From positions 124,001 to 188,000 of IMG/VR virus record IMGVR_UViG_3300042545_001134: DNA of 64,000 nt. One strand, 5' to 3'. The translations under genes and the position numbers were made by a program. Position 1 is the stretch's first letter, and the number at the start of each line of letters is the position of its first letter. Of this stretch, positions 21,223 through 40,735 are shown piece after piece. Under the pieces are notes generated by a model, which ran no database searches, was not told the DNA's origin, and saw only the letters and a list, made by a program, of their open reading frames with translations.

Positions 21223-22076
21223 ATTGATATGATTTTTTTAATTAATTTATTCCATTGTTTATACTGTTTGAATTCGGGTTTTGATGTATTTTTTTCAAAC
21301 ATGTATTCAGGTTCATTTAAATCTATTTTAAATTTTGATTTTCTCAATGATTCGTACATTTTTTTATACTCGGATGAATATGCGTATGGTTGATTGATTA
21401 ACGCAACATTTTTAACCCTCCCAATTGAATCTTTATCCCATTTAAAATGGTGAACCTGTATTGAATATGTATCAATTGGTGCAATCAGTGGGTGACTCCA
21501 ACCTTGCCATCTCCATGTGGTGTGACCATCTATTTTTGCATAGTGTTGACCATTTGTGATTTCAACATATCCTTTAACAACACAAATCTTATTGGGGCAG
21601 GCATCACTCATTGGATGTCTAAAGAAACCAGCATTTGGGTATTGTTTCCAAATAGATTCATTTGGTTGTAATTCTGAAAACTCCCCATCGGGTCCAATTC
21701 TATCAATAAATCCACCGCGTACAATATCCCAATTGTTTTTTTCACAATCAGATATTAATTGTTTTAAATTGTCTTTGGGGTATAGATGGAATTCATCGAT
21801 ATCGGCGATTACCCACCAATCATCAGGATAATCCTTTTTAATGTAGTTGTATGATTGAGTTACTTTTTCCCAATCAAAAACTCTTTCGTTGATTGTCTTA
21901 ACAATCTTTACATTGGTAAACTCGATAAGAATCTGACTAATTTCATCACCCAATTCTCGGTGTAAATCAGATTCGTATACAACGATGTTAATTTCGTCAA
22001 CATATTTTTCATAATGTTTTATAAAGTGGGGTAGTAACTTAGTTCCATGTCCAATTACAGTTAATAACCTTATCAT
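21219..22076 (-). CDS. GT-A fold glycosyltransferase (GT2/GT92-like)
   Basis: LLPHFIKHY, WWVIADIDEFH (DxDE motif), KICVVKG, HHFKW. Confidence 0.7.
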   Translation of the reverse strand: MIRLLTVIGHGTKLLPHFIKHYEKYVDEINIVVYESDLHRELGDEISQILIEFTNVKIVKTINERVFDWEKVTQSYNYIKKDYPDDWWVIADIDEFHLYPKDNLKQLISDCEKNNWDIVRGGFIDRIGPDGEFSELQPNESIWKQYPNAGFFRHPMSDACPNKICVVKGYVEITNGQHYAKIDGHTTWRWQGWSHPLIAPIDTYSIQVHHFKWDKDSIGRVKNVALINQPYAYSSEYKKMYESLRKSKFKIDLNEPEYMFEKNTSKPEFKQYKQWNKLIKKIISI

Positions 22077-22801
22077 TTTTTTCTATTTATAATCGTTATC
22101 CCCGTCGAAGACGGTTTTGAAGGAATAATACGAAAATTAAATAGATTAATCAAGTTCCACTCGGGATTTTCTTGTAGTTCTTTAATAAATTTGGACGGAC
22201 CGTCAAACTTATGGTAATCTTTTTTTGCATCTTCAGACACAATTAGATTCTTTTCATAGTTTTCATCGGTATCGTGAATAACAATCACCCCGTTTTCAGA
22301 TAATAAGGTGGAGTAAAGGTCAAAATCTAATTTTACACCCTCATAGGTGTGGTCTCCATCAATAAATAGGAAATCAATCTTAATATCTTGGAGAGTAAAA
22401 AAGTTATAAAAGGCGTTTTCTGAGGTATTTTTAATAAATCGTGGGTAAAACGTTTTTCTATAGAAAGAATCTTCATTTTCAAGGTCAGTTTCTCCACCAA
22501 CACCGTTACATGCGTCCACAACATAAGTTGCACCAATGTCACCCCAATTATAATCGGGATTCCCCTCAAAAATACCTTGTTTGTGAAGGTCAATACGTGA
22601 CTGTGTGATGATACGTGGAATGAATCCACCACCTGAACCGATACACACACAATTCTTTGCTCTCATGTGTTGTATTAGACTATAAACAACAATCCCATCA
22701 CCCATATGGAAATCGGTTGCACCGTGTGTCCAACGATAGGGAACGGGATTATCCTCGTTATTAGTAATAAAGTTCTTTATGTAGTCACTATTGGTAATCA
22801 C
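22073..22801 (-). CDS. Class I SAM-dependent methyltransferase (Methyltransf_24-like)
   Basis: VCIGSGGG, VVDA, IDFLFIDGDHTYEGVKLDFDLYSTLLSENGVIVIHD. Confidence 0.85.
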   Translation of the reverse strand: MITNSDYIKNFITNNEDNPVPYRWTHGATDFHMGDGIVVYSLIQHMRAKNCVCIGSGGGFIPRIITQSRIDLHKQGIFEGNPDYNWGDIGATYVVDACNGVGGETDLENEDSFYRKTFYPRFIKNTSENAFYNFFTLQDIKIDFLFIDGDHTYEGVKLDFDLYSTLLSENGVIVIHDTDENYEKNLIVSEDAKKDYHKFDGPSKFIKELQENPEWNLINLFNFRIIPSKPSSTGITIINRKK

Positions 22802-23213: not shown

Positions 23214-25166
23214 TTAAAAGACAACCCACAAACTCCAGTTATCTGCTCCACCGATAATTGATGGTTCTGTCCAACCGGCGTATCCACATACACCCGTTTT
23301 AAGTGGGTTACCACCATTGACACCTATACCGAACGCAGAACCTGCGGCACCATATGACAACGCACCTGTATTTCCGGTACTCTCATCCAATATACTACCA
23401 ACTCGTATTCTTCCTCCTGAACTACCTCCACCACCACCATAGTGTCCCTCATGTTTTAAATCCATACCCATTAGGTATATTTCAGTACCAAGAGCACTGG
23501 TGTATCGTCTATCTGCACCAACTAAACTTCTATAGTCAATACTGTTACCGAAATGTGGTGAACTTCTATTTGCTGAACTATTCCAACTTCTTGTTTGTGC
23601 TGCGTACATACTACTCACTTCACTTGCCAATGAGAATGTTGATTGGTAATTAAGTTCACCCATGGTCCAATAGAATTCCGTAAATGGAACGACGTTGTAA
23701 CTTTGATATTTACTACTAACTCCGTTTGTTAGGGTAAAATCATTTTGGTTATCTAATGTTGTGTTTTCCCAATATGAACTATCGGGTACATAACCACTTT
23801 CATTTCCACCTTTCATTACGCAAACCATTGCCTTATTTAAATAAAATTTAACAGGTGCTTGAAACGCCGATTGTCCACTTGGTTGTAACCAATAGTTACC
23901 ATCTTTTGAAATACCTAAATTTTTTAAATAAGTGGCACTTGGAGCCGCTAACGCTTGGGTGCTACCATCCTTAACTGATGGTAATGAAAATCTACCTTTA
24001 TATTGTTGATAGTTATTTAAAATTTCATTTTCGGTTAATGCCCTGTTATAAACTTTTGTAACGTCTACTTGACCATTTAATTTATAAGTACCGTAACCAC
24101 TATGATTACTTTGTCCAATCCAAGTTCCGTATATTGGATATGCTCCCATTTTTGTGTCAACATAAACACCGGCAGATTGTCCATTAATATATAATCTCAC
24201 TCTACCATCTGTTGCACTTATTGTTTCGTAAATCCCAACAACATGATTATAATTGGTTTTTGGTTGGCACGCAACTGTTGCGTTTCCACTAACCGTGTAT
24301 TGATATCCTACAGTGTCGGGTGGCCCACTTCTTGTTGATAAACTAACAATATCGGATGAATATGAGTACCACAAATTAAAACGATAATTTTCAAATAACG
24401 GTCCGTCATTACCTGATGCTCCACTAGCAATTTTAAAAACTTGTTCAACGGTTACCGCAGAAACGCTCGATGGGAAATAATCACTAACATTACCTAAATC
24501 AATTCTATCATCTGTTCCATCTAAAACGGGTTTACCATTTGCATCAAAAGAAGATGCCGATAAATCAATAGTTGTTAAACCCACAATATCTAATAACCCT
24601 TGTGTTACACTTCTTGAACCGTCAACAAATGGTGTGGCAAACGAACCAGCCTCAATTTGTGGCATTGTTACTTCCCATGACGAAAAATCATCACAATAAG
24701 TTCCACCGAATGATATTAAATAAAAGGTACCGTTAGTTCCCGTGCAATTTTGTGTGTTGGACACTCTAATCCACTCACCGGGAGACGATTTACTATGGTA
24801 CGCTGCGGTGTCACCGATTCCAAAACCACTTGTATAGACTGTACCACCATTATTATTTGCCGAACCTCCAATATACCTAATATATGCGGAAAATGTGTAT
24901 GTTCCGGTTGATGGTAATGATATACCACCCATAACGACACCATTCCAAGAGCCAAGATTTGACATTCGATATCCTGTTGTTCCAAACTCTGTTGTAAACG
25001 TAACAGGTGTACCACAAGAATAGTTACCAAAATTCGCCATAGTTGACGCATTGGTAACATAATTTGTTGTTGGTTTACCCTTAAATGAATTTTTAGTTTC
25101 ACCAACATCATACCCAAAGGTTAATCCTGATGTTGAAATTTTTCCATATCCCGAATTTACTGACAT
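23214..25166 (-). CDS. LamG/ConA-like lectin protein with CBM-like insert and C-terminal fibrinogen/intelectin-like domain
   Basis: GLTFGYD..NSFKGKPTTN; insert ending PQIEAGSFATPF; LDGTDDRI..LNGQVDVTKVYNRALTENEILNNY; then SATYL..DGNYWLQPSG. Confidence 0.8.
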   Translation of the reverse strand: MSVNSGYGKISTSGLTFGYDVGETKNSFKGKPTTNYVTNASTMANFGNYSCGTPVTFTTEFGTTGYRMSNLGSWNGVVMGGISLPSTGTYTFSAYIRYIGGSANNNGGTVYTSGFGIGDTAAYHSKSSPGEWIRVSNTQNCTGTNGTFYLISFGGTYCDDFSSWEVTMPQIEAGSFATPFVDGSRSVTQGLLDIVGLTTIDLSASSFDANGKPVLDGTDDRIDLGNVSDYFPSSVSAVTVEQVFKIASGASGNDGPLFENYRFNLWYSYSSDIVSLSTRSGPPDTVGYQYTVSGNATVACQPKTNYNHVVGIYETISATDGRVRLYINGQSAGVYVDTKMGAYPIYGTWIGQSNHSGYGTYKLNGQVDVTKVYNRALTENEILNNYQQYKGRFSLPSVKDGSTQALAAPSATYLKNLGISKDGNYWLQPSGQSAFQAPVKFYLNKAMVCVMKGGNESGYVPDSSYWENTTLDNQNDFTLTNGVSSKYQSYNVVPFTEFYWTMGELNYQSTFSLASEVSSMYAAQTRSWNSSANRSSPHFGNSIDYRSLVGADRRYTSALGTEIYLMGMDLKHEGHYGGGGGSSGGRIRVGSILDESTGNTGALSYGAAGSAFGIGVNGGNPLKTGVCGYAGWTEPSIIGGADNWSLWVVF

Positions 25167-25169
25167 ATC

Positions 25170-26381
25170 TTAAATAAACTTAGATTTTGTATTTGTATAT
25201 AGTTTATTAATTTCAGTTGCATTCAACACTTCATTGTATACCATAGATAGTGGTAATTTACCTTCATATGATGAGTGGTATTCTCTACCAATCATCGCGG
25301 TCGACGCTCTCGCAGTTCCACCCAAAAATCCCGTATTGGCACTATTAATCGATTGACCATTCAAATAAAGAATTAAACCTCCCGCTATATTGTAGGTACA
25401 CGCTAACATATTCCAAGAATTTAATGGTGTACTTCCACCTCCAAGTAAATAATCATTTGCCCCATTATTGTTACCAACCCATGCGGCCAAACCACCATGA
25501 TAATAACTCATTAATTTAACACCATGTCTATATGCTGTATCAGTACAAATTATTGTTCTATGTGGTGCACCTGTTCCACCATTCCAATAAAACCAACCAG
25601 CAAGTGTTACATCACCGGTTATTGTACTTATTGGTCCGTTTGTGATGACACCATAACTATTCGAACCATCAAAATATATCTGACCATTATTATCGAATCC
25701 ACCATTGGTCATTGTCACCGTTGAATTACCTGTTACATCGACAATTGCATTTGTTGTACTTCTTGTTCCTAAAACTAAAGATGTCATGTGGTTTTTTTGT
25801 TCGACTTGATGTCCAAAATACCATATTTTATCCCCAATATATGTTCCTATGTAGTTACTAATATAAATTCCATCCTCGTTAGCTGCTGTGGTTCCACTTG
25901 CAGTTATTTTTATCCATTGATTGGCTGGCCATGTACTTGTATCTGTATTTCCATTATAAGCCAAATTGGCTAAACCCACATTTGTAATATTGGTTCTTAA
26001 ATATGGTTGGGACGCACCTGCCCTGCTTTGTCTGTACCATACTGAAACGGTATATGTTGTTGATGGGGATACGTATGTAAACCCACACCCAAATTGTACA
26101 CTCCCACCCGTTGCGGTACTTCTTCCACTTAATACTCTAAGGTTTGTGGCATCAACCCCCGGAGTTGATGGTTTTGGAACATCGGTTTCGTTATCGTTGT
26201 ATTCCCATGAACCCACATTCACCCATGATATTGGTGCTGCCAAATATTCACTACCACCTTGACCATTATTATATGAAAGGTTGGTTGTTGGTTCTCCTTT
26301 AAATGAGTTTGCAGTGTCAGTTACATCGTAACTGAATATCAATCCACTATTGTTAATATTTGGTCCTAAACTTTGTGACAT
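25170..26381 (-). CDS. LamG/ConA-like lectin protein with CBM-like insert
   Basis: GLIFSYD..NSFKGEPTTN, TYTVSVWYR, QVEQKNH, YFDGSNSY, WNMLACTY, YEGKLPLSMVYN. Confidence 0.8.
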   Translation of the reverse strand: MSQSLGPNINNSGLIFSYDVTDTANSFKGEPTTNLSYNNGQGGSEYLAAPISWVNVGSWEYNDNETDVPKPSTPGVDATNLRVLSGRSTATGGSVQFGCGFTYVSPSTTYTVSVWYRQSRAGASQPYLRTNITNVGLANLAYNGNTDTSTWPANQWIKITASGTTAANEDGIYISNYIGTYIGDKIWYFGHQVEQKNHMTSLVLGTRSTTNAIVDVTGNSTVTMTNGGFDNNGQIYFDGSNSYGVITNGPISTITGDVTLAGWFYWNGGTGAPHRTIICTDTAYRHGVKLMSYYHGGLAAWVGNNNGANDYLLGGGSTPLNSWNMLACTYNIAGGLILYLNGQSINSANTGFLGGTARASTAMIGREYHSSYEGKLPLSMVYNEVLNATEINKLYTNTKSKFI

Positions 26382-27088
26382 TATAAACCGAATCTATTTT
26401 TTGTTGCGTTATAGTTTTGTGTTATTTCCGTTGGACTTAATGGTCGATTATAAATCCTATAAATTGGAATTGCACCATTTGTGGCATAAGACCCACCATC
26501 ATATGCTCCAATGGATATTGGGCTCGATGTGTTTTGAGAGTATACATTATTTGTGTCGTTTAATACCAAGGTTGTGTTAGAATATAATCTTCGATTAACC
26601 CCATCATGTGTTGCCACAATATTTCTCCAAGTACCTGCAGATGACCCAATACTTGCACCACCATCATTTCCATTTGTTCCTTGTGTTCTGAAGGTCAGAG
26701 TAGAACAATAATATAGTTCCCAAGAACCATTCCATTTAGTAAACGCAGTACACACATATGATGTTTCTCTAATCCACATATCTATGGTCATACCATTCTC
26801 ACATAACGCTTGGTCAAGGATACTTGTATTTGAGATTAATGCGTAGTTATTTGCATCACCATCACTTCCACCAAGATGTCTATCAAACATCATATATTTT
26901 GTTGTTGTGTCGTATCCCGATGTATTTCCCGCAGATGGTGAATTCATATTAATCATGCTAGCGTTATGACCATATCCACTTAAATCGTACCATGTGGTAC
27001 CACTACCCGGATATGATGTACTATCCATGGAATCTAATAAAACTATTAAACCATCTGTAACTAATCTCGAACTAAAATGTAATGCCAT
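26381..27088 (-). CDS. LamG/ConA-like lectin protein (no insert)
   Basis: TDGLIVLLD..SYPGSGTTWYDLSG...IYRIYNRPLSPTEITQNYNATKNRFGL. Confidence 0.85.
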   Translation of the reverse strand: MALHFSSRLVTDGLIVLLDSMDSTSYPGSGTTWYDLSGYGHNASMINMNSPSAGNTSGYDTTTKYMMFDRHLGGSDGDANNYALISNTSILDQALCENGMTIDMWIRETSYVCTAFTKWNGSWELYYCSTLTFRTQGTNGNDGGASIGSSAGTWRNIVATHDGVNRRLYSNTTLVLNDTNNVYSQNTSSPISIGAYDGGSYATNGAIPIYRIYNRPLSPTEITQNYNATKNRFGL

Positions 27089-27100
27089 ATCTTAAATACT

Positions 27101-29170
27101 TTATTTAATCCAAATACTATAGTAGTATGTCCCACCAATATTTGCCGGTGGAAAATCTTGACCCGCACCATAAACTGAACCAGGTATGATATCTCTATAA
27201 TCAATGGTACCACCTCTATTGGTAAAACAACCAATCCCTGAAGGACCGTCAACGCCATCAGCGGCATCATGTCGATGCCACGCAATCATAGTTCTATCTT
27301 TATTTCCGTCTTGAGCCCCGTCAATTTCACCGTATTTAAATAATAATTTACTCTTACCTGATGATTGTAAAACTGGGTCATCAACTCCAAAATTTGTTAT
27401 ATTAAGTGCCTTAACTCTATTTCTATTAAATGCATCATTTGATGCATCGGAACCGAGTGCTCCCCATTTTAATGAACCAAACCAACTTGATAATGAAGAA
27501 TTATTGGATTTAATCTGACCTTCATTTGTATATAATAATTTACGTTGTGAATTACCTGCATCTTTTATCATTATCTGTGAGAAGGGGATTGATGACCATC
27601 CTGTATTTTTATAATCGGAAACAAACGTCGGAGTCGAACCCCCAAAAGTTGTATTATCATCCCACGGCGGACATGATTGAATTGCATTCATATCATTACT
27701 CCATTTATGATATGTTGAGTTATTACTCGGAGCATCCTCATCGTCGATTGTCCCGACATGAACCCATGGTGCGCCTACACTATTAAAATCAATATACGCC
27801 TGAAATGGTGTTGAACCTGATGTTGGTTTTAACCAATAAACACCGTCAGTTCTATATCCAACATCATATAATAATTGAGCACTTGGCGATGCTGATTCCG
27901 ATGCGGTACCCAAAGTATTAACCGCCGTTAGTGATTTTACATCTCTTAAAACAAATCTATCTTTATAATGTAGGTAGTTTTTATGAACTTCCTCCGGTGT
28001 TAATTCTTTATTATAAATTTTAAGAACGGGAATGTCTCCTTTATAATAGTATGCTTTGACCGTATCAATATCATATCTACCAATACTTACACTATTAAGT
28101 AAAGAAATTGTTGATGTTTGACCCCCTCCATAGTGCCACAAAGTACCATCCAAATAAATTCTCATAATACCTGTGGTTGAATTCTTACTAACCACCCAAT
28201 GATGATTACCAAGATAATTATCAGACGACCCAATTGCTTTAGATATTCTATTAAACGGTCTACCAAAATCCCAATAAACATTTCCATCACCCCATGGTAG
28301 GTGTAAATTTAAATCTTGATTTCCTCCACTACCACCCGCAATAATTGAGTTATTCTGTAACGCACCACTCCACGATGTTACTATCTCGATTGTTATTTGA
28401 TTTCCTGTTGGTATTGCCGACGGACTCAAGTTGATGTAATCATCAGAACCATCAAAATTTATTTTTGGATTTGTATCTGAATTAAAGGTTACGTTCGTTA
28501 AATCTAATGAATGATTATTAGTTAAATCTTTTAACCCTTGGGTTACAGAACGAGTACCATAAACATATTGTGATATTGCGGTACTATTTAAATCTTCTTT
28601 GAATGGTCCCGCCCAAAATATAGTGATTGGAACATTTAATGATGCACTTAACGGGTTAATTGCCCAATATTTTCCATCGGATTGTGTTACCGTATTATAC
28701 CATAATACCCTTGCTCTAAACCAACCATCCCCCATATCTTCGGGTGCACAGCTTTGACATTGCCAACCACCAATATTTGAATAGTGTAGATAAATTGGTG
28801 TACCAGCCATTGGTACTGTTGGTTTAAAAAATATTGAGTGTCCCGTGTATCTATTCGCTAACCCACCGCCAGATGCTCCACCATAAAGAACAACACCTAA
28901 TCCGGGATTATTCGCATTCGATAACCAAGAAACACCACTACCATCCAATGGAGTTAGTGTTTGTCTCCATATTGGTGCACCTTTATATGTGTCACTTGTT
29001 TGAGTTAAATTTGTTGTAACACTTCCCGGTACGTTATTGTAGTTATATAAAGGTTCATTAAATCCGATATTATTTGTTGGTCTACCCAAATATGAATTAT
29101 ATGTGTCACCCGTGTCAAATCCGAATACTAAACCATCTTTTGTTGTTGAACCGTTTTGTTTACTTGCCAT
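27101..29170 (-). CDS. LamG/ConA-like lectin protein with insert and C-terminal fibrinogen/intelectin-like domain
   Basis: GLVFGFD..NSYLGRPTNN, GTRSVTQGLKDLT, FDGSDDYI, YKGDIPVLKIYNKELT; then SAQLL..DGVYWLKPTSGSTPFQAYIDF. Confidence 0.8.
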   Translation of the reverse strand: MASKQNGSTTKDGLVFGFDTGDTYNSYLGRPTNNIGFNEPLYNYNNVPGSVTTNLTQTSDTYKGAPIWRQTLTPLDGSGVSWLSNANNPGLGVVLYGGASGGGLANRYTGHSIFFKPTVPMAGTPIYLHYSNIGGWQCQSCAPEDMGDGWFRARVLWYNTVTQSDGKYWAINPLSASLNVPITIFWAGPFKEDLNSTAISQYVYGTRSVTQGLKDLTNNHSLDLTNVTFNSDTNPKINFDGSDDYINLSPSAIPTGNQITIEIVTSWSGALQNNSIIAGGSGGNQDLNLHLPWGDGNVYWDFGRPFNRISKAIGSSDNYLGNHHWVVSKNSTTGIMRIYLDGTLWHYGGGQTSTISLLNSVSIGRYDIDTVKAYYYKGDIPVLKIYNKELTPEEVHKNYLHYKDRFVLRDVKSLTAVNTLGTASESASPSAQLLYDVGYRTDGVYWLKPTSGSTPFQAYIDFNSVGAPWVHVGTIDDEDAPSNNSTYHKWSNDMNAIQSCPPWDDNTTFGGSTPTFVSDYKNTGWSSIPFSQIMIKDAGNSQRKLLYTNEGQIKSNNSSLSSWFGSLKWGALGSDASNDAFNRNRVKALNITNFGVDDPVLQSSGKSKLLFKYGEIDGAQDGNKDRTMIAWHRHDAADGVDGPSGIGCFTNRGGTIDYRDIIPGSVYGAGQDFPPANIGGTYYYSIWIK

Positions 29171-30444
29171 TATAATCCGTATTGTGATTTTGTTCTATTG
29201 TAATTATTTTGAATTTCTGATTGGGTTAACCCTTTTGAGTATGCCCTTACACTTCCAATTTTTCCATTAAAATTATATGATGAATTTCCTATTCCCCAAC
29301 TCCATGTTGGGGAACCGATTGTACATTGAGTTCCTTGTGGTGTGATTAAACCACTTCTCGTTGCGGTGTATTCCGTACCATTTAAATAAAATCTACAGGA
29401 TGTACCATACCATGTATAAGCCACATGCATCCAAGTGTTTACAGGGGCACTAACACCTGTTAACCAATCTTCAGTACTACTTCCATAATTAATAACGTAC
29501 CAAACACCATCTGAAATCATTAATGACCTCGATGCCCCATAAACTTGCGCTTCCCCCATTGAGAAAACATAATTTTGACCACTTACGTTTGTTGGGTGAC
29601 ACCATGCCTCAATTGTTCCAAATGCCTGTTGGTGACCTGTAATTCCCGTGAACGACATGTAATCGTCAGTACCATCAAACTCAAGTTCCCCAAGAGTTTT
29701 AATAGGTAATCCAAAGTTTAAATGAGCAACTGCTGATGTATCAACAGGATAGTTTTCAAACGCCCAACCAAATGCATTTCCAACACCAAGACCTGGTCTA
29801 CCAACCAAAACCCATTCGGGTCTTCCCGGTGATGGGTTCCACCCTGAAACCAATGACGGTGCACCTAAATCCAACATCATATTGACTGTGTTAGTGTCGT
29901 ATTGGTCAGCGGCGTGTGAACCAATTAAAATAAATGTACAATTTGGGAAACGTCCTCTTATTCTACTATAATCTCTAACTAACCAAACTAAATTATTTCC
30001 ATAACCAGTTTCTGAACCACCATAGTTGTCATAAGTATGGTAACCACTTGAATTTGAACCAACAAAATACGAATCCGCAACCCAAGAACTTGTATCGTTA
30101 TCCCAAGCCCACATACCTATTCCTCTACCAACACCAAATAAATTGTACGAACCTCTAATATTGTATCCCGTGTGAATCCCTTGGTATAAAAAACCTATTG
30201 AATCGGTACCGTAGTTACCTTCGGGGTATGTTTTCCCACCTCCAGTATAATATGTTTTATTTGAAAGTCTTAATCCATTAATGAAAAGACTTTTATTACT
30301 ATTAATTTGATTAACCACACCATCAGTACTTCCATTATATCCACCACACCCAATAGGGCTAACACCCGTACCAATGTTATGGGTGTCAACTACAAAATAT
30401 GCATCTTGTAAACTCGATAATATGGTTCCCGATTTTGACGACAT
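29170..30444 (-). CDS. LamG/ConA-like lectin protein with ILEI/PANDER-like segment
   Basis: C-terminal FDGTDDY..WMHVAYTW..FNGKIGSVRAYSKGLTQSEIQNNY; middle FILIGSHAAD..MLDLGA..R.EWVLVGRPG. Confidence 0.75.
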   Translation of the reverse strand: MSSKSGTILSSLQDAYFVVDTHNIGTGVSPIGCGGYNGSTDGVVNQINSNKSLFINGLRLSNKTYYTGGGKTYPEGNYGTDSIGFLYQGIHTGYNIRGSYNLFGVGRGIGMWAWDNDTSSWVADSYFVGSNSSGYHTYDNYGGSETGYGNNLVWLVRDYSRIRGRFPNCTFILIGSHAADQYDTNTVNMMLDLGAPSLVSGWNPSPGRPEWVLVGRPGLGVGNAFGWAFENYPVDTSAVAHLNFGLPIKTLGELEFDGTDDYMSFTGITGHQQAFGTIEAWCHPTNVSGQNYVFSMGEAQVYGASRSLMISDGVWYVINYGSSTEDWLTGVSAPVNTWMHVAYTWYGTSCRFYLNGTEYTATRSGLITPQGTQCTIGSPTWSWGIGNSSYNFNGKIGSVRAYSKGLTQSEIQNNYNRTKSQYGL

Positions 30445-30632
30445 TAAACGTTAATTTTTTCTACCTCAGTTATGTCCCATAAATTACCCATTTGATTTTC
30501 AAAATCAACGAATATTTGGTCACCATATATTGGGCAATAAATTTCCCAATTACTTTCGAAATCAATCTCACCTTCTGAGGTTTTGATTATTCTCTTATAC
30601 TTGTCTTCTTTTATGTGGAACTCTAATTTCAT
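30444..30632 (-). CDS. Hypothetical protein (62 aa)
   Basis: ORF track; TAATG coupling to the downstream gene. Confidence 0.6.
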   Translation of the reverse strand: MKLEFHIKEDKYKRIIKTSEGEIDFESNWEIYCPIYGDQIFVDFENQMGNLWDITEVEKINV

Positions 30633-30638
30633 AATATT

Positions 30639-31337
30639 TTATTTTATATAAACCGCACCATATTGGTGCGTGTCAGAACTTGAACCATTCCAATATGGTC
30701 CATTATCATATCCAAAATAGTTACCGCCCCAACATGACTCATACCACCACGGGTTATTACCGTAATATGATGAACAACTTCCACTATTGGTATCTTGGTC
30801 GTTATCGTATGTACTTAAATTATATCCGCCAGCAGCGTGATTATTGTATAAACCGGGTGAACCGGTACTTGTTTCATCACTTAACGCGGCAACACCAGAA
30901 AACGCAAATGTTGGTGTGAAATTATCAAACTTCCATCTGTATCTTTTGGTGTGTGAACCATTTAAAGGTGTCCCATTTGTTGGTGAAACAAACTGAGCAA
31001 CGGTTACATAACTTGAGTTGTTTCTTTTACCTAACGCCTCCCAATATTTTGTTCCAATCCAAACATTGTAGTTTGTTAATCCCGATAAATTATATAATGG
31101 TTCATTGGTATTACTCGATGTTCTATAGTTACACGTATTAATTGCATCATAGTACGTTAAGTTTCTCATTCCAACTGAACTCGCCCTATTCGCAATAACA
31201 CATACCCATCCGCCACCATCATATTCTTGGTCCACGTACACCACAACATTGTCGTTTCCAACTTTGATGTTGTAATATCCACTAGGTCCTGTTATTTGAG
31301 ATACACTCGTATATCTCCCTCCAAAATGCATTGCCAT
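30639..31337 (-). CDS. Fibrinogen C-terminal (FReD) domain protein
   Basis: SGYYNI..VYVDQEYDGGGWVCV; HAAGGYNLSTYDNDQD..SCSSYY..PWWYESCWGGN. Confidence 0.82.
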   Translation of the reverse strand: MAMHFGGRYTSVSQITGPSGYYNIKVGNDNVVVYVDQEYDGGGWVCVIANRASSVGMRNLTYYDAINTCNYRTSSNTNEPLYNLSGLTNYNVWIGTKYWEALGKRNNSSYVTVAQFVSPTNGTPLNGSHTKRYRWKFDNFTPTFAFSGVAALSDETSTGSPGLYNNHAAGGYNLSTYDNDQDTNSGSCSSYYGNNPWWYESCWGGNYFGYDNGPYWNGSSSDTHQYGAVYIK

Positions 31338-31355
31338 ATCTTATTCTTATATTAT

Positions 31356-31362
31356 ATAAATA
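31356..31362 (-). promoter_or_regulatory. TATTTAT putative late-promoter element
   Basis: 18 nt upstream of ATG 31337. Confidence 0.5.
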
Positions 31363-31366
31363 CCTT

Positions 31367-32539
31367 TTAAGTCAATCCGTATTGACGTTTATATTTTAAG
31401 TAATCATTTAGAATTTCTGTATCACTTAACTGTTTATTATAATGTTTGAAAACAGGAATATCCCCTTGGAAAAATTCATTTGTACTGTTATCACTACCTA
31501 TAGTTATTTTATTATTTGGTGCATTGTTGAATCCTGTTCTAACCGGTGTGGTTCCACCCAATACTCCATTTGAAAAGTGGGATATTGACCCATCATTATT
31601 TAATCTTACAACGATGTGTACGTATTGATTATCTGGAATTGCACTTACGGTATGGTATGGTACATTTAAACTATCGTAATATGTGAATATTGCCCCCGAA
31701 CCTGAACCAATATATAACGCACCTCCACTTGTTCCGTTTCTATAACTAATAATGTTTTTTTGTCCCGTATATCCCGTACTTGTTTTTCTGATAACCGCAA
31801 CAATTGTGGTTCCTGTGTTCACATTAACGGTTGATGGTGGAACAACATCAATTTTATCGTTTGTTCCGTCAAATGTCATTACCGCACTTGAATTAAACGA
31901 AACTCCCGATATATTAACTGTCGAATTTGTGGTTAAATCTAATAACCCTTGTGTGTTACTTCTTGATGTTGTTGTAAATGGTGTAGAATGTGAATTTCTT
32001 TCCCATTGAGCGGAAGATATGAAAACATTTGTACTTGTTGTGATACCCCTAACCGCAACCCAATGATAATCAACAAACGTAGTTAAACTTTCTGTGATTG
32101 TGTATCTAACCCAATCACTAGTTAATGTAATATCGGGACCCAGTTGATAACAGCATTGGTCATTATATGTTGCCAAATGACATGTTCCACTTCCTTTTAA
32201 ATAAACACTAAAACTTACCGTTTGATTAGATTCATTAACTACCGCATTTCCTTGTATCGTCCAATATGTTTGTGAATTTGTATCTGTTGTTGTTCCACTA
32301 ACTTGGGAAAAGTTACCCGATGGTATTGTATTGTCAACTCCATTAATAACAATTGCACTGGTTTGATATTGTCCATTAGCATAACTAGTACTTACATTCC
32401 CACCATAGTATGAGGCAATTGTTGCCACTAAATTAGTTGTTGGTTCCCCTCTATATGAGTTTGTTGTATCTTTTAAATCGTAGGCAAACACCAACGATTC
32501 TGAACCTGAAGTTTTACCAAATCCGTCTTGTACTGCCAT
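31367..32539 (-). CDS. LamG/ConA-like lectin protein with CBM-like insert
   Basis: LVFAYD..NSYRGEPTTN, SFSVYLKG..WVRYTIT, QWERNSHSTPF, FDGTNDKI, FQGDIPVFKHYN. Confidence 0.8.
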   Translation of the reverse strand: MAVQDGFGKTSGSESLVFAYDLKDTTNSYRGEPTTNLVATIASYYGGNVSTSYANGQYQTSAIVINGVDNTIPSGNFSQVSGTTTDTNSQTYWTIQGNAVVNESNQTVSFSVYLKGSGTCHLATYNDQCCYQLGPDITLTSDWVRYTITESLTTFVDYHWVAVRGITTSTNVFISSAQWERNSHSTPFTTTSRSNTQGLLDLTTNSTVNISGVSFNSSAVMTFDGTNDKIDVVPPSTVNVNTGTTIVAVIRKTSTGYTGQKNIISYRNGTSGGALYIGSGSGAIFTYYDSLNVPYHTVSAIPDNQYVHIVVRLNNDGSISHFSNGVLGGTTPVRTGFNNAPNNKITIGSDNSTNEFFQGDIPVFKHYNKQLSDTEILNDYLKYKRQYGLT

Positions 32540-33684
32540 TATATTCCGTATTTTCTTTTAATGTTATTATAGTTATTCAAAACTTCTGAGGATGATAATG
32601 CTCGGTTATAGAACGAAGTATTCGTAATTTTACCGTTAAAGTTTGCGGAAGATATGGGTCCATCGTTTCCAATATAAGCGGTGGCCTGTACAAAGTTGTA
32701 CCCTGTTGTGGCTGTGGCAACTGAATTTGCATTATAGTAGAGTGTAACGGCGGTTCCATCTCTGGTTATGACTACGTTAGTCCATTGCCCCACTGTGGGA
32801 AGTGTACTGTATTGAAGATGGTCTTCGACATTATATGCCCTTAAAACCATATTAGAACCAAGTTTACCTATCCAAAGTCCTCCAGTGACCGCAACAACTA
32901 ATAGACCAGCATAGTAAGAATATCCCACCGGATTTATCCAACAGGAGTATGTAAAATTTCCAGTTCCCGGAGCTAAATATGGATTATTACCAGCAGTAAT
33001 AAAATCATCCGTACCATCAAAAACCATTTGAGAGTTAGAATCGAATGAGACACTTGATAAATTAATTGTTGAATTGCCGGTCAAATCTAAAAGTCCTTGT
33101 GTTGTTGAACGGGTACCATTTACAAACGGTGTTGGATGTGATTTTACTTCTACTTGAAGATTTGAAAATCTCACTTTAACACTTCCCGATGAACCACCAC
33201 TACCGTTATTCATCCAAATTAAAATTCCAACCTTACCACCCGTACCAATAACTCCACTCCATGAAATTCTTTCTCGTGTTTTAGTATTTTTTGTGTTTCT
33301 ATCTTGTTCGGGTGAATACCCTAAATAAGTTTCTTCATTAACCGTTTGACCAATCCACATAAAACTAAACACACCATTGGTTTCATCGAACGACTCAACC
33401 ACCGCAGATATTGTAACGTATTGACCTGTATAATCGGATACATTATAATAAAAAGTTGTCCATGCCGCAACACCTCCCCACTCAACAGATGATGTTGTGA
33501 AATCAAAAGTTTTTGTTGCGCTATCAATTAAGGCATATGAACTCGGCCAACCACCATATAGTGGAGTGTTGTTTGCCAAATTTGTTGTTGGTTCACCCAA
33601 ATAGGAATTCTTTTGGTCAGATAAATCATAACCAAATACTAAATTCTCTTCTCCTGATATGTTGGGTCCTACGTGTGTTGGCAT
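32539..33684 (-). CDS. LamG/ConA-like lectin protein with CBM-like insert
   Basis: LVFGYD..NSYLGEPTTN, QVEVKSHPTPFVNGTRSTTQGLLDLT, FDGTDDFI, FNGKITNTSFYNRALS. Confidence 0.82.
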   Translation of the reverse strand: MPTHVGPNISGEENLVFGYDLSDQKNSYLGEPTTNLANNTPLYGGWPSSYALIDSATKTFDFTTSSVEWGGVAAWTTFYYNVSDYTGQYVTISAVVESFDETNGVFSFMWIGQTVNEETYLGYSPEQDRNTKNTKTRERISWSGVIGTGGKVGILIWMNNGSGGSSGSVKVRFSNLQVEVKSHPTPFVNGTRSTTQGLLDLTGNSTINLSSVSFDSNSQMVFDGTDDFITAGNNPYLAPGTGNFTYSCWINPVGYSYYAGLLVVAVTGGLWIGKLGSNMVLRAYNVEDHLQYSTLPTVGQWTNVVITRDGTAVTLYYNANSVATATTGYNFVQATAYIGNDGPISSANFNGKITNTSFYNRALSSSEVLNNYNNIKRKYGI

Positions 33685-34382
33685 TATAATCCGAATCTTG
33701 TTTTAGTTGCATTATAATTTTGAGTAATTTCTGCTTGAGTTATTACTCTATTATACATGAGAAAATTATATACATTTCCATCTAACGGATAGTTTCCACC
33801 AATTTGTAATCCTGATTGATTACCTAATGCCGCTCCACCTCCTCCTGTAGTAGTTAATAGGGTTGTGTTTTTGTAAAAATTTATATTTGAATTTGTTAAA
33901 CCATTTCCGTTATAGGTCATGGTAAAATAAAATATTTCGTTGTCAGTAAAGTTACTTGTAGTTTGAGTAAAGTTTGTTTGAGTTGCCGTGGAATTTTTTA
34001 TAAAATACCAATAACTTTGACCGTTACTATAGAATACATTTGTAACTATATAATGTAAACTATTGGATGAATTTAGATTGACTAAACACTTATCACCCAA
34101 TGTATCAAGTTTCATCCATGTACTAAATGACCACGCTCTTGATGACCAATCAATATCGCCAAATGGGGATGTTACTTGGGCATAATCATTACTCCCGTCA
34201 AAAACAATACTTCCTTTATTATTGGAGTTAAACGATGCACCATTAATCAATGTACCATTGTTTGCATTACCACTTAAATCATTCCACGAAGTACCCGACC
34301 CCGGATACGAATTGGTATCGGCGGAGTTCAAACATAAAACTAATCCATCTGTAATGATTTTTGCGGTGTATTCTAAACCCAT
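33684..34382 (-). CDS. LamG/ConA-like lectin protein (no insert)
   Basis: TDGLVLCLN..SYPGSGTSWNDLSG, FDGSNDY, MYNRVITQAEITQNYNATKTRFGL. Confidence 0.85.
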   Translation of the reverse strand: MGLEYTAKIITDGLVLCLNSADTNSYPGSGTSWNDLSGNANNGTLINGASFNSNNKGSIVFDGSNDYAQVTSPFGDIDWSSRAWSFSTWMKLDTLGDKCLVNLNSSNSLHYIVTNVFYSNGQSYWYFIKNSTATQTNFTQTTSNFTDNEIFYFTMTYNGNGLTNSNINFYKNTTLLTTTGGGGAALGNQSGLQIGGNYPLDGNVYNFLMYNRVITQAEITQNYNATKTRFGL

Positions 34383-34386
34383 ACCA

Positions 34387-34393
34387 ATAAATA
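34387..34393 (-). promoter_or_regulatory. TATTTAT putative late-promoter element
   Basis: Only 4 nt upstream of ATG 34382. Confidence 0.4.
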
Positions 34394-34446
34394 CCCAAAA
34401 CCTCAGTTATTAGGTCTCAATTTGTTAGATAATAAACATGGTAGTG

Positions 34447-35214
34447 TTAAATGTCGTATCTTTTCTTGAAGATTTCCCAATGATGTTCAATTTCAGTGTC
34501 AGATAATCTCTTTGAGTGGCACATCACGACCCCCATTTGACCGTTAAACTGAGTACTAGGTCCATCCGTACCGGGACCATAACTATCGGAGTTACAAGGA
34601 CCCCATAAACACCCAATACTATTTAATGGTGGATTAATTGACCCAACTAAAGTGGTATCATCCACCATATTATTATCAATGTACATTTTAATGTTTGTAC
34701 CTGCAACTGACCAAACGCAATAATGCCAATTACCATCATTAATTCCACCCGTTGTACTGTCAATTATTTGCCACGGTGCGGTATAATACCACATTCTTAG
34801 AAATCCATTTGAAATAACAAATCCAGCTCCCGATGGACCTCCATTACAGTGACCTAAAATTGCGTTATCACCACTAACACTTAATTTAACCCACGCCGAT
34901 ACGGTAAAGGTTGTTCCTAAGTTAAACGTTGATGGTGTTTTACCAAAATCATTAACACCATCAAATGTAAATTCACCACCTTTTGTTGTGGTGAATGGTA
35001 CTCCTTGTGATGGGTTACTGGAGTAAGTTGTCCCCCCATATGTGTACATGGTCAAATCTCTACCATTACCACTTAAATCTTTCAATATAGGACCATTACC
35101 TGAATATGAATAATAACGAGCAGGGTCGTAATATAATTGTAGTGAGTCAGTAACCACACCACTAATGTTGTAGTTTGAGTTTATTTTATTATCGGGTCCA
35201 GTTGTTATCGACAT
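34447..35214 (-). CDS. LamG/ConA-like lectin protein (no insert)
   Basis: DSLQLYYD..LKDLSGNG, FDGVNDF, FTVSAWVK, WHYCVW, FNGQMG. Confidence 0.82.
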   Translation of the reverse strand: MSITTGPDNKINSNYNISGVVTDSLQLYYDPARYYSYSGNGPILKDLSGNGRDLTMYTYGGTTYSSNPSQGVPFTTTKGGEFTFDGVNDFGKTPSTFNLGTTFTVSAWVKLSVSGDNAILGHCNGGPSGAGFVISNGFLRMWYYTAPWQIIDSTTGGINDGNWHYCVWSVAGTNIKMYIDNNMVDDTTLVGSINPPLNSIGCLWGPCNSDSYGPGTDGPSTQFNGQMGVVMCHSKRLSDTEIEHHWEIFKKRYDI

Positions 35215-35215
35215 A

Positions 35216-36373
35216 TTATATTCCGAATCTATTTTTTATTGCATTATAGTTTTCTAAAACTTCATTACTACTAAGTGTTCTATTATATATTTTAGATATC
35301 GGGATTTCTCCTGAAAAATTAGCGGCAGTTCCTAAGTTTTGCGCTCCAATTATTAAACTCACGTCAGGGTCTTCAGTCCACGTTCCTGTCGCAACTGAAT
35401 CGGTACTATCCAATACCCCATTTATATAATAAGATAAAACGGTGTCGTTTAAAGTTACGGTTATGTGGTAATAATTTAATGTGGAAGAAATGTCTCCATC
35501 ACTAAAATACGCATAATATCCACCATTAATAATAAATGCAATATGTATTTTTGTTGTGGGGTATCTTCCAAACCACCATACCGACCCTAAAGTATTATCC
35601 CATCTCGTAATAAATGCTTCTGAACCTGTGGAGTTATTAAATTTTACAACCGATTCCCAAGTCACTCTTCGACTATTTAAATCAAACGGTTGGACTAACC
35701 CACAATTAATAAAATCATTCGTACCATCAAATTCTATTTGTGAACTAGAATTAAATGAGACATTTGATATATCGATAGTTAAATTTCGTGATAAATCTTT
35801 TAACCCTATAGTGGATGAGCGCGTACCATTAATAAATGGTGTTGTGTGTGATTTCTTTTCAACTTGTGGTTCTTTTAATTCAAATGAGTGTGTATATGGA
35901 GTATAATCATCACCATCTTGCATATACCAAAAAAACAAATCAGTACCTGGTGGTGTAGTATAGTTATATGTCGCGGTTTGCCATTCATATGTATCAACAA
36001 CCCCTAATTGAATTGTTGTTGGAAACGCTGGTTGTACATAACTCCCACCTACTCTAGAATAAATTTGAAATCTAAGTGATGGTGTACCTCCAATTTTTCT
36101 ATATTTTACCGAAAAAGTATATATTGAATTTTCATTAACACCCCCCATCGTAATTGATTGTCTTGTATTTGACGCAATGTCATCAATTCTACAATGGTAT
36201 GGAGATATTATCGTTCTTGTTCCAGCGGCACTGTAACCTGACGCATCTATTCCCCATGCACCCCATACTGGATTAACCAAATTAGTTGTTGGTTCTCCAA
36301 CATATGATTTGGCATTATTAACATCGTAATAAAACACTAATCCATCTCTCGTTATTTTAGGTCCATTACTCAT
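35216..36373 (-). CDS. LamG/ConA-like lectin protein with CBM-like insert
   Basis: GLVFYYD..SYVGEPTTN, YTFSVKYRK, PQVEKKSHTTPF, FDGTNDFI, FSGEIPISKIYNR. Confidence 0.82.
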   Translation of the reverse strand: MSNGPKITRDGLVFYYDVNNAKSYVGEPTTNLVNPVWGAWGIDASGYSAAGTRTIISPYHCRIDDIASNTRQSITMGGVNENSIYTFSVKYRKIGGTPSLRFQIYSRVGGSYVQPAFPTTIQLGVVDTYEWQTATYNYTTPPGTDLFFWYMQDGDDYTPYTHSFELKEPQVEKKSHTTPFINGTRSSTIGLKDLSRNLTIDISNVSFNSSSQIEFDGTNDFINCGLVQPFDLNSRRVTWESVVKFNNSTGSEAFITRWDNTLGSVWWFGRYPTTKIHIAFIINGGYYAYFSDGDISSTLNYYHITVTLNDTVLSYYINGVLDSTDSVATGTWTEDPDVSLIIGAQNLGTAANFSGEIPISKIYNRTLSSNEVLENYNAIKNRFGI

Positions 36374-37491
36374 TATATTCCAAATCTTGTTTTAATTGCA
36401 TTATAGTTCTGATATAATTCCGAAGATGTGAGTGCCCTATTATACACCTTCGCAATTGCGATTTTTCCAATCCATCTTTCTCCATCACCTGACCCATGAG
36501 CACCTATACGTAAAAAATCCCAATCCATAATATCAGCACATGTGGTTGTTACAACTTGAATTGTTCCATTTACGCAGAAAGTTAAAGTGGTACCATTATA
36601 TGAAACGGCAACATATGACCATTGTCCGGTTGGAACAGATAAACTTGAACCTGCACATGGCCAAAACCCTAAAGTTCCATTTGGGAATACGTACAACGCA
36701 TCGTCACTATCAACATTATTTTGAATGATTGCCTCATATCTTCCAGTTGCGGTGTTTCTATAAACAACCGCCTCTATTGTTGGGTAATTAATTGAAGTTG
36801 GGGAAAAATTGGTATCGATAAAATCATCTGTTCCATCAAACGACATTTGTGCATTTGAGTCGAAAGAAACACTAGATAAATTTATTGTTTCATTTCTTGT
36901 TAAATCAAGTAAACCTTGTGTTACTGAACGTGTACCATTTACAAATGGTGTTGCATGTGACTTTGCTTCCACTTGCCAATCCGCAACATAAAAAGTTTTA
37001 GGTCCGCCCTCACCATAGAACCCAGTTATCGATGTTAGAGTCATAGATGTTCCATTATATAAAAGAGTACCTAAATACCATCCATCGAATAGATAAGTGA
37101 ATGTTGGTCCAGGATAAAAAGAACCCTCAGAACCGTAAATATATCCACCCGTTATTATTGTATTGGGATTTGACCCATCTGACATTTTTATTTTAAACGA
37201 TACCGTAAAAATTGGACTACTAACACTAGTATTATATGAGTAAACATATGAATTCCAAAATCCACCAGCATTTATTACCACCTTTCTTGATAATCTTCCT
37301 TGGAATGTTTCTTCCGAAGAATTTGCGGTTTGAGTGATATTCAATGGAGTATCACTACTAAATGTATTATTCGCAATATTAAAATTAGATAAATTTGTTG
37401 TTGGTTCACCGGCAAACGACTTTTCATTACCTGTATCGTAATAAAAAATTAAATCTTGTGTTGTTGTTTTTGGTCCTCTGTGGTGTCCCAT
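36373..37491 (-). CDS. LamG/ConA-like lectin protein with CBM-like insert
   Basis: LIFYYD..SFAGEPTTN, WQVEAKSHATPFVNGTRSVTQGLLDLT, FDGTDDFI, WIGKIAIAKVYNRAL. Confidence 0.82.
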   Translation of the reverse strand: MGHHRGPKTTTQDLIFYYDTGNEKSFAGEPTTNLSNFNIANNTFSSDTPLNITQTANSSEETFQGRLSRKVVINAGGFWNSYVYSYNTSVSSPIFTVSFKIKMSDGSNPNTIITGGYIYGSEGSFYPGPTFTYLFDGWYLGTLLYNGTSMTLTSITGFYGEGGPKTFYVADWQVEAKSHATPFVNGTRSVTQGLLDLTRNETINLSSVSFDSNAQMSFDGTDDFIDTNFSPTSINYPTIEAVVYRNTATGRYEAIIQNNVDSDDALYVFPNGTLGFWPCAGSSLSVPTGQWSYVAVSYNGTTLTFCVNGTIQVVTTTCADIMDWDFLRIGAHGSGDGERWIGKIAIAKVYNRALTSSELYQNYNAIKTRFGI

Positions 37492-37496
37492 ATTAA

Positions 37497-38570
37497 TTAC
37501 GCTATTTGAGACATTGTTACAATTATTGATGGTGTTGCGGGTCTAGATGGACTGGATTGTATTCCTTCGTAATATATTTGAGTGTCAGAACGGGTTGATG
37601 ACCACATTAATTCCACATATTCGGTTGCGTTTAATTCAACAAAAAAATTCCATGCGGCAACTAACTTCCCACCACCCGATATTTTTTCAATAGTTAAATC
37701 GGTATTGGAATTTGGGACATTGTTTCCATTCTTTCGTAACCAAATCGATATCTCCGCAGCATTATTTGTGGTTTGAAGTAACTGTGCCGAGAATTGTAAA
37801 TTATATATCCCACTATTTGCTGCGGTTATTCTTGTTCCACTAACAATACTAAATCCACTCGCCAAATCAACGGTATTAAGTCTCATTTCATGTGGAGTGG
37901 ATGAAGTCCCACCTCCATTTTGAATTGTTGTGTCACTAAATTGTCCGTAGTTGAGTGGTTTCCAACTCGCACCCACTCCATCAGTCTGTAAAATTCTTCC
38001 ATCATATGAAGAACTAATTGCCGGTAAACCACCACCAACTGTAGCAGTTGCATAACCTGATTGTGCTAAAGAAAATGTAATAATTGTTGTTATGTCACTG
38101 AACATCTCAATAGATGTCGGTATTACCACAAATCCGTTATCGTCATATACCTGAATAACGGGAAATTGTTCACCTAAATTGTGATTAAATGTCCAAGTTG
38201 TTGCTGGTGTTGAAACTGTTAATAATTGTGTTGAACCCGGAGTGGATTCAATTGTAAACGCCAAACCAGCATAAGAAGAGGAAACAGAATATGAGGATGA
38301 TACCGCATATGATGATGAAATTACATTCGTAATTCCTGAACCATTACCGACGAAATTAGACGCGGTTATATCTCCAATTAAATTTATCGAACCCGTGTTT
38401 ACGGTATTCGTGGAGATTAATTCTTCGATTGAGGGTCCCCCCGAACCTGACTTGGCAAGAAAAACTTTACCGTCACCAGTGTTAATGGATAATTCCCCTA
38501 ATTCGAGTTGTGCGTTTGTAGGTTTTTTACCTAAAACGGAACTTCTACGCAGTCTTACTATTTGCGCCAT
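37497..38570 (-). CDS. Tail-fibre-like protein (Mtd_N-like N-terminus, C1q/BclA-like C-terminal head)
   Basis: MAQIVRLRRSS..KPTNAQLELGELSINTGDGKVF; C-terminal ITAANSGIYNLQFSAQL..IWLRKNG..FVELNATEYVELMW. Confidence 0.65.
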   Translation of the reverse strand: MAQIVRLRRSSVLGKKPTNAQLELGELSINTGDGKVFLAKSGSGGPSIEELISTNTVNTGSINLIGDITASNFVGNGSGITNVISSSYAVSSSYSVSSSYAGLAFTIESTPGSTQLLTVSTPATTWTFNHNLGEQFPVIQVYDDNGFVVIPTSIEMFSDITTIITFSLAQSGYATATVGGGLPAISSSYDGRILQTDGVGASWKPLNYGQFSDTTIQNGGGTSSTPHEMRLNTVDLASGFSIVSGTRITAANSGIYNLQFSAQLLQTTNNAAEISIWLRKNGNNVPNSNTDLTIEKISGGGKLVAAWNFFVELNATEYVELMWSSTRSDTQIYYEGIQSSPSRPATPSIIVTMSQIA

Positions 38571-38654: not shown

Positions 38655-38684
38655 AAATAAAAAACCCCAATTTCTTGGGGTTTT
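38655..38684 (-). terminator. Rho-independent terminator
   Basis: AAAACCCCAA-GAAA-TTGGGGTTTT stem-loop followed by a T tract on the minus strand, after gene 38708-40687. Confidence 0.8.
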
Positions 38685-40687: not shown

Positions 40688-40715
40688 AATTTTTGTATAA
40701 TTTTTTTTCTTTTAT

Positions 40716-40722
40716 ATAAATA
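40716..40722 (-). promoter_or_regulatory. TATTTAT putative late-promoter element
   Basis: 28 nt upstream of ATG 40687. Confidence 0.5.
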
Positions 40723-40735
40723 GTTAATTTTTCCT

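Follow-up and report, generated by a model that had tools for sequence, protein, structure and literature searches.

The host range of phages is set by their binding proteins, and how these proteins diversify is a central question. The locus described here lies in a window of 64,000 nucleotides (nt), bases 124001-188000 of one 310,691-bp IMG/VR virus record (IMGVR_UViG_3300042545_001134); coordinates below are positions in this window. Twelve open reading frames (ORFs) stand there back to back, all on the minus strand (23214-37491), several with overlapping stop and start codons, and 11 of them score above the cut-off of the Pfam family Laminin_G_3 (PF13385, here LamG; 40.5-67.3 bits versus a gathering cut-off of 27.6). 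What do these genes encode, and how does their variety arise? The reading favored here, given a probability of roughly 0.62, is that of an array of lectin-like proteins which probably belong to the virion and whose variety comes from recombination at joints under structural constraint. Recombination of modules among related phages is directly visible in the sequences; the place of the proteins in the phage is argued from their fold, family, and gene neighborhood.

Organization of the array

The source genome (about 311 kb, 93% complete according to CheckV) codes for a T4 gp23-type major capsid protein. Its nearest relatives belong to uncultured huge phages, Rhodothermus phage RM378, Microcystis phage Mel-JY01, and Flavobacterium phage immuto, at just 29-42% identity, and a close relative in culture is therefore absent; a megablast search of records from cultured phages with an 8-kb piece of the array gave no match. 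The carrier is an uncultured T4-like jumbo phage, and the array occurs in public runs from lake-water metagenomes. The whole genome contains 17 LamG matches.

The array paralogs are overall 25-40% identical to one another. A preliminary description of this DNA had listed 11 LamG genes; all 11 pass the Pfam threshold, but the run of 12 ORFs also includes a gene of another family, similar to the fibrinogen C-terminal domain. Scans for promoters and terminators found promoter-like sites to be rarer than in shuffled sequence and gave no clear operon boundaries. In two relatives the array has the same flanks, with an nt identity of about 84-86%, and these serve below for comparison by position: L001, a 60-kb Joint Genome Institute (JGI) contig, and L002, a 64.6-kb European Nucleotide Archive (ENA) scaffold. 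Module borders were placed with three motif hidden Markov models (HMMs), which replaced a regular-expression definition that was too strict (13 proteins; 50 of 120 known homologues missed). From the high-coordinate end, the genes are as follows.

36373-37491, minus strand: o36373, long-type LamG gene, 372 amino acids (aa), Pfam PF13385; N-tag at residues 1-33, nested insert at 34-171, linker at 172-224, LamG core at 225-340, C-motif at 341-372 (motif HMMs)
35216-36373, minus strand: o35216, long-type LamG gene, 385 aa, Pfam match, predicted nested topology with an insert resembling a carbohydrate-binding module (CBM); N-tag at 36281-36373, insert at 35870-36280, linker at 35711-35869, core at 35315-35710, C-motif at 35219-35314
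34447-35214, minus strand: short-type LamG gene without a nested domain, 255 aa, Pfam match; stable position, 76-89% identical in L001 and L002
33684-34382, minus strand: short-type LamG gene, 232 aa, Pfam match; unrelated short LamG genes stand here in L001 and L002 (31% identity)
32539-33684, minus strand: o32539, long-type LamG gene, 381 aa, Pfam match and module borders
31367-32539, minus strand: o31367, long-type LamG gene, 390 aa; N-tag 86-91% identical in L001 and L002, insert and core replaced there
30639-31337, minus strand: fibrinogen C-terminal-like gene, 232 aa, not LamG; Pfam Fibrinogen_C (PF00147), 30.1 bits (cut-off 22), E 5.5e-7; 96% identical in L001, absent from L002
29170-30444, minus strand: o29170, LamG gene, 424 aa, Pfam match; a different N-terminal domain of about 250 aa, without the GEPTTN and KSH..TPF motifs
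27101-29170, minus strand: o27101, long-type LamG gene, 689 aa, Pfam match and module borders; 280-aa C-terminal extension
26381-27088, minus strand: short-type LamG gene, 235 aa, Pfam match; stable position, 78-91% identical in L001 and L002
25170-26381, minus strand: o25170, long-type LamG gene, 403 aa, Pfam match
23214-25166, minus strand: o23214, long-type LamG gene, 650 aa, Pfam match; 255-aa C-terminal extension

Constant motifs and variable cassettes

In seven of the 11 LamG genes, about 135-155 aa separate the first LamG strand from the rest of the domain, while the three short genes have a plain loop at this place. The long genes had been proposed to share an N-terminal, a linker, and a C-terminal motif, and the invariant residues bear this out: L12, F14, D17, G26, P28, T29, and N31 in the first, E172, R185, S186, T188, and D193 in the second; the third reads YN..L...E...NY...K.RFG. 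The LamG part had also been described as a fixed scaffold, which is not what the identities say. Among the seven long paralogs, mean pairwise identity is 46% in the N-tag, 22% in the insert, 49% in the linker, 23% in the LamG core, and 42% in the C-motif. The core is thus as variable as the insert, and the scaffold is reduced to the three short motifs.

Two of these joints recur in the DNA as repeat families.

32999-33156, minus strand: linker joint, reference copy of repeat family D1, to which ends of homology blocks map; other copies, at 62-79% nt identity over 158 nt, lie at 31851-32008, 35709-35866, and 36818-36975
33683-33779, minus strand: C-motif with the stop/start joint, repeat family D2, where contigs from lake metagenomes diverge on both sides of 33683-33722; other copies, at 65-72% nt identity, lie at 26380-26476, 35215-35311, and 36372-36468

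The flanks had been called conserved even in DNA, which holds only weakly, as the three linker stretches cited are 71-79% identical over the 158 nt with at most 20 nt exact. Between paralogs, the best DNA match spans 62 nt with 87% identity, and exact matches do not exceed 20 nt. Use of the same codon at identical residues is slightly above expectation in the motifs (0.58-0.60 versus 0.50-0.56) and equals it in the cassettes (0.45 versus 0.45-0.46). In the LamG jelly roll, the N-tag corresponds to the first strand, the linker to the strands that follow the loop, and the C-motif to the last strand with the terminal helix. Conservation of the three motifs is most simply explained by structural constraint.

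Nested jelly rolls

The structure of o35216 was modeled with AlphaFold2 from 99 homologues, with a mean predicted local distance difference test (pLDDT) score of 91.5. Jelly rolls of the LamG type align with the model over about 190-205 residues spread across positions 7-384 (Z scores 18-19), among them domain 4 of arabinanase AbnA and the lectin-like HCN domains of clostridial neurotoxins. The latter likeness is merely that of a common lectin-type jelly roll; a toxin reading was rejected, no sign of a toxin being present. A viral cluster of LamG-only proteins of 219 aa, from a protein atlas, likewise aligns 212 residues across positions 1-385. Since LamG-only proteins span the whole of o35216, its N-terminal strand (12-17) belongs to the LamG sandwich, and residues 32-170, approximately, are predicted to form a domain nested in the first LamG loop.

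Modeled alone, this insert reaches a pLDDT of 93.6. Its structural matches include the hyaluronan-binding CBM70 (Z 14.7), the C-terminal domains of the Klebsiella K2-2 tailspike, CBA120 TSP4, and the Kp7 fiber gp52 (Z 13.8-14.4), and CBM16, CBM61, and CBM4 (Z 13.4-13.5); CBM matches at Z 12-14.7 (CBM70, CBM16, CBM61, CBM4, and CBM22) cover 126-138 of its 149 residues. The family profile matches the CBM4 of laminarinase 16A (1gui, E 8e-5). The o35216 insert itself falls below the Pfam cut-off for CBM_4_9 (PF02018; 16.7 bits versus 25.9, E 0.01); a weak match to this family occurs in the gene of one relative, and in a similar atlas cluster 97% of the members carry it. The insert is thus predicted to fold as a jelly roll of the CBM4 kind, nested inside that of LamG, and its earlier description as CBM-like agrees with the pLDDT of the isolated domain, the CBM matches at Z 13-14.7, and the CBM4 profile. 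No solved structure was found to match the LamG part and the insert together.

Exchange of modules among relatives

A search with o35216 returned at least 850 homologues, many of them on contigs of 180-376 kb. Several match only one half of the query at high identity, and sliding identity shows them to be chimeras. Up to about residue 170, P0003 matches o35216 at 90-100%, and beyond it o23214 at 60-90% (93% to the o35216 insert and 76% to the o23214 core); in P0003/L001 a core of the o23214 type sits behind the o35216 insert. Conversely, P0004 carries the o35216 core (93%; sliding identity 86-100%) behind an unrelated insert, and P0085 joins an N-terminal domain of the o29170 type to a core of the o35216 type. 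P0017 and P0077 are equally clean chimeras. Within one gene, identity falls at a motif border from more than 90% to less than 30%.

The same pattern is found position by position in L001 and L002. The N-tags of matched genes are kept at 64-91% identity, mostly 80-91%, while the insert, the core, or both are often down to 23-30%. The core of o32539 occurs in L001 with 93% aa identity in the neighboring array position; in the L001 counterpart of o27101 the core alone (aa 247-375) has been replaced; and the L002 counterpart of o25170 has kept its insert (75%) and exchanged its core (25%). A gene thus has two cassettes that can be swapped, and of these the LamG core has been replaced no less often than the insert. 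The stable positions are the short genes at 34447 and 26381, the fibrinogen-like gene, and o29170; other positions have been replaced. L002 lacks three array genes, and more distant relatives have from 0 to 11 LamG genes. In the comparison of the window with L001 and L002, the longer blocks of high identity end in the N-tag, the linker, or the C-motif, or no more than about 6 residues from a border of one of them; none ends deep inside a cassette, the sole apparent exception being the end of the locus.

Separate trees of insert and core, from 25 proteins, are incongruent, as expected of the shuffling that had been proposed from the paralogs and that the chimeras P0003 and P0004, together with the block ends in or next to conserved motifs, display. 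The insert tree groups o35216, P0001, L002_10001, L001_7, P0005, and P0006 (support 98/97), a group rejected by the core data (log-likelihood difference 358.5; approximately unbiased [AU] test, p 1e-44). The core tree groups o35216, P0001, L002_10001, P0004, P0007, P0017, P0081, and P0115 (100/100), which the insert data reject in turn (difference 90.3, AU p 2e-5). The 141 unique long-type proteins include an insert cluster with 101 members, which occurs with 48 core clusters, and a core cluster of 14, which occurs with 10 insert clusters. Cores are less than 30% identical in 123 of the 254 pairs whose inserts are at least 85% identical.

Short contigs assembled from four lake runs match the array and then continue as unlike sequence. 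The sites of divergence (33683/33722, 36286/36411, 36822/36858, and 32999/33032) are the joint motifs, and depth peaks in the bins that contain joints; depth in these runs is low (about 3-7) and the material is contigs, not reads, so that coverage holes prove nothing. Since the paralogs of this genome share no 31-mers, the branching comes from other co-occurring genomes that share the joints. A close relative, L079 (98% flank identity), is collinear across the first three array genes at 96.5%, and a second assembly is 100% identical over 21 kb. The turnover is therefore evolutionary and not a rapid switch.

How the exchange may take place

Could the same variety have arisen with no recombination at all, through very rapid divergence of inserts and cores under diversifying selection, with the motifs unchanged? 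Fast evolution is common among surface lectins, and paralogous cassettes identical at only 22-23% would fit such a course. The chance that it explains the locus is nevertheless minimal, as the same cassette recurs at 76-93% identity with unrelated partners or in another array position, the drop in identity at a motif border occurs within single genes, and the AU tests reject a common history of insert and core; chimeras, position-matched module identities, and AU tests together refute it. Scarcely more probable is a programmed system that reshuffles the array within one lineage, such as a diversity-generating retroelement, a shufflon, or gene conversion of the kind known from pilins. Tandem paralogs with conserved joints do resemble silent-cassette systems, and depth peaks and contig branching at the joints could be read in the same sense. 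The earlier remark that neither reverse transcriptase nor invertase is in view is supported by scans of the 310.7-kb genome, which found no reverse transcriptase (PF00078), no resolvase, and no integrase or tyrosine recombinase, in a sequence that is 93% complete. The array genes lie on one strand, and the array has no meaningful inverted repeats (at most 28 nt, at most 85% complementary). No near-identical pair of template and variable repeats is present either, the repeat families being 60-88% identical and the paralogs sharing uninterrupted matches of at most 20 bases. Every copy is a full-length gene rather than a silent fragment, and both the identical second assembly and the collinear relative speak against switching. 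The array is not a programmed switch.

The exchange most likely takes place by general recombination between related phages that infect the same cell. The genome has recombination genes, namely an SbcC/gp46-like gene and a weak RecA/UvsX-like match. Homologous recombination, which the preliminary description considered possible, is right as to recombination itself, but the DNA homology between the paralogs of one genome is too low for frequent exchange within it, and most of the exchange is better explained by related co-infecting phages with position-specific joints in common.

The model that follows is built on the predicted structure. In each long-type protein, the LamG jelly roll is predicted to enclose a second, CBM4-like one between strands 1 and 2, a design that gives two potential sugar-binding modules per protein. 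Structure would hold three segments constant, namely the first strand with S(Y/F)xGEPTTN (the N-tag), the linker QVExKSHxTPF..GTRSxTQGLxDL...FDGTDD, and the last strand with the C-terminal helix. In cells infected by several related phages at once, recombination in or next to these segments would swap an insert or a core as a whole cartridge. Exchange at the same position would use the well-conserved, position-specific joints and the neighboring genes, and occasional moves between positions would rely on the weaker homology of the paralogous motifs. The outcome would be a combinatorial repertoire distributed across the phage population.

Virion adhesins or another role

The array directly follows three fiber-like genes on the same strand, with overlapping stop and start codons. 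The LamG cores match phrog_8510, annotated as virion structural protein, with E values down to 7e-20, and genes of phages S-PM2 and Syn1 annotated as virion structural, at 26-31% identity; atlas clusters similar to this family are, with few exceptions, viral. Judged by their fold, family, and gene neighborhood, the array proteins would sit on the virion next to the fibers and bind glycans of the host surface.

An alternative, rather unlikely, places the LamG proteins with the neighboring sugar-modification cluster inside or on the infected cell. There they might target or recognize glycans for modification or for the exclusion of other phages, with cassette exchange tracking the diversity of host glycans. 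Genes for a methyltransferase, a GT2-like protein, two GT7-LamG fusions, a radical SAM protein, a UDP-glucose dehydrogenase, and a carbamoyltransferase do lie directly downstream, LamG domains are fused to enzymes within that cluster, and the array proteins have no recognizable virion anchor domain. Against this, the array proteins show in their sequences neither a catalytic domain nor an N-terminal hydrophobic signal, they are contiguous with the fiber-like genes on one strand, and their nearest annotated phage relatives are labeled virion structural proteins.

Several points weigh against the reading as virion adhesins diversified at the joints. A CBM or LamG fold, here a predicted one, is not by itself proof of sugar binding. 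In the long-type proteins LamG is the sole Pfam family above cut-off; no separate anchor domain was found, and the N-terminus belongs to the LamG fold. As for recombination, BLAST blocks run into any conserved motif, so that crossovers are resolved to a motif and not within it; both groups subjected to the AU test were chosen after the identity data had been seen; and the homologue set, from one query, is biased towards the o35216-type insert. Moves from one position to another would need homeologous or illegitimate recombination, given paralogous joints that are 71-79% identical over 158 nt and match exactly over no more than 20 nt. The collinearity of the first three genes in a relative with 98% flank identity implies that turnover is not fast.

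Neighboring genes and further observations

The following genes border the array.

37497-38570, minus strand: tail-fiber-like gene, 357 aa, directly upstream; matches to PHROG tail fiber and virion structural families
38708-41449, minus strand: two further fiber-like genes, 659 and 237 aa, recognized from their sequences, without Pfam match
18172-21011, minus strand: two fusion genes of a GT7-type glycosyltransferase with LamG, downstream, within the sugar-modification cluster at 11033-22801

The 357-aa protein has a tail-fiber-type N-terminus, which the N-terminal motif of the 659-aa protein resembles, and a C-terminal tip that has relatives in small phages from freshwater. It is modular, in that its relatives match either the N-terminal part (1-190) or the tip (195-357). 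In L079 (L079:8419-8873) nucleotide matches are missing from most of the region coding for the tip (about 37500-37960). The tip has relatives in Limnohabitans phages and in phages from spring water, and one of these relatives is annotated as a C1q-like roll fold. A perfect 10-bp hairpin between runs of A and T (AAAACCCCAATTTCTTGGGGTTTT, 38661-38684) lies in the gap between the genes for the 659-aa and 357-aa proteins and, judged from its sequence, looks like a terminator on both strands.

Pfam scans assigned no family to the C-terminal extensions of o23214 and o27101 or to the N-terminal domain of o29170. The two extensions (23214-23978 and 27101-27943) have in common a stretch of 42 aa with 45% identity and end similarly at the C-terminus; possibly they represent a third type of add-on module. 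Comparison of the o27101 extension with the fibrinogen-like gene did not support a relation between the two.

The sugar-modification cluster (11033-22801) lies on the same strand as the array and contains genes for a NodU-like carbamoyltransferase, a UDP-glucose dehydrogenase, a GDSL-like protein, a radical SAM protein, the two GT7-LamG fusions, a GT2-like protein, and a methyltransferase. The GT7 domain of the fusions is beta-1,4-galactosyltransferase-like, and the cluster could possibly modify glycans of the virion or of the host. Glycosylation of the array proteins by the neighboring glycosyltransferases was dropped as an idea, enrichment in N-x-S/T sequons being unconvincing (z -1.8 to 3.2).

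At the low-coordinate end of the window (1-7969), past the sugar-modification cluster, stands a single ORF of 4057 aa that continues to base 119796 of the genome (L082:97-12270, minus strand) and to which a Pfam scan assigned no family; two LamG matches lie just below it, at genome coordinates 118261-118662 and 119063-119524. In L002 (97-276) and L079 (61-240) a 59-aa protein matching Pfam Hc1 (chlamydial histone H1-like) is encoded a few kb upstream of the fiber genes. L001 carries, between two short LamG positions, an inserted unrelated gene of 232 aa without LamG (L001:1960-2658).

Comparison with known systems

The LamG/concanavalin A (ConA)-like virion proteins of cyanophages S-PM2 and Syn1 (phrog_8510) have a LamG core homologous to that of the array, at the 26-31% identity given above, but the matches cover the LamG half only. 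Records of the phage collection showed neither the nested CBM-like domain nor the three joint motifs nor an 11-gene array. Diversity-generating retroelements acting on lectin-fold tail proteins also diversify a surface-binding protein of a phage; the phage described here lacks both reverse transcriptase and a template/variable repeat pair, and its diversity comes from exchange of whole domains rather than from targeted mutation. From shufflons and invertible tail-fiber switches the locus differs in having no recombinase, no real inverted repeats, and genes on one strand.

Klebsiella jumbo phages have many depolymerase tailspikes. With these phages and with CBA120 (TSP1-4), which carry several receptor-binding proteins, the locus has in common a row of binding proteins beside tail genes, and its nested insert matches the C-terminal domains of CBA120 TSP4, K2-2, and Kp7 gp52 (Z 13.8-14.4). 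The array proteins differ in having neither a beta-helix depolymerase body nor a separate N-terminal anchor, with only LamG found in Pfam. They are small (232-689 aa), lectin-like, and probably not enzymes, and their unit of exchange is internal to the protein, not C-terminal.

Closest is the adhesin system of the T-even phages. In gp37/gp38, recombination between conserved motifs (His boxes and glycine-rich motifs) was described to swap hypervariable segments of specificity (Tetart et al., 1998, as cited in PMC3157838), and in gp38 the points of exchange lie in or next to conserved motifs (Trojet et al., 2011, PMC3157838). Here, too, a T4-like phage has short conserved motifs (42-49% identity) around highly variable cassettes (22-23%), block ends fall at the motifs, chimeras occur, and the repertoire is spread over the phage population instead of being made by one genome. 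Unlike in that system, no gp37/gp38 family was found (Pfam and PHROG gave only LamG and virion-structural families), the units swapped are whole folded lectin domains, nested, rather than loops of one small adhesin, and up to 11 tandem paralogs, whose role as adhesins is inferred, replace a single gene. The array is thus an unusually modular form of the known T-even adhesin shuffling, in which each gene has two cartridges that are whole domains.

Should the proteins prove to be adhesins of the virion, the locus would represent a modular design with two slots that arose in nature. It could then account for the way in which large lake phages follow the variable glycans of their hosts, and might offer a template for engineering binding specificity. 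A bolder proposal, put forward tentatively and itself rather doubtful, is that the three joints, beyond their structural necessity, were selected as a "plug-and-play" clasp, one constant docking piece (first strand, linker, and last strand with the C-terminal helix) bearing two independently exchangeable lectin cartridges; the array and the lake-wide pool would then form a two-slot combinatorial library for host binding, a design not described for any phage receptor-binding system. With whole lectin domains that are nested yet change independently of each other at three fixed joints, in as many as 11 tandem genes, and with at least 850 family members in uncultured freshwater jumbo phages, the locus is a clean and testable case of crossover placement set by the structural constraints of the protein.

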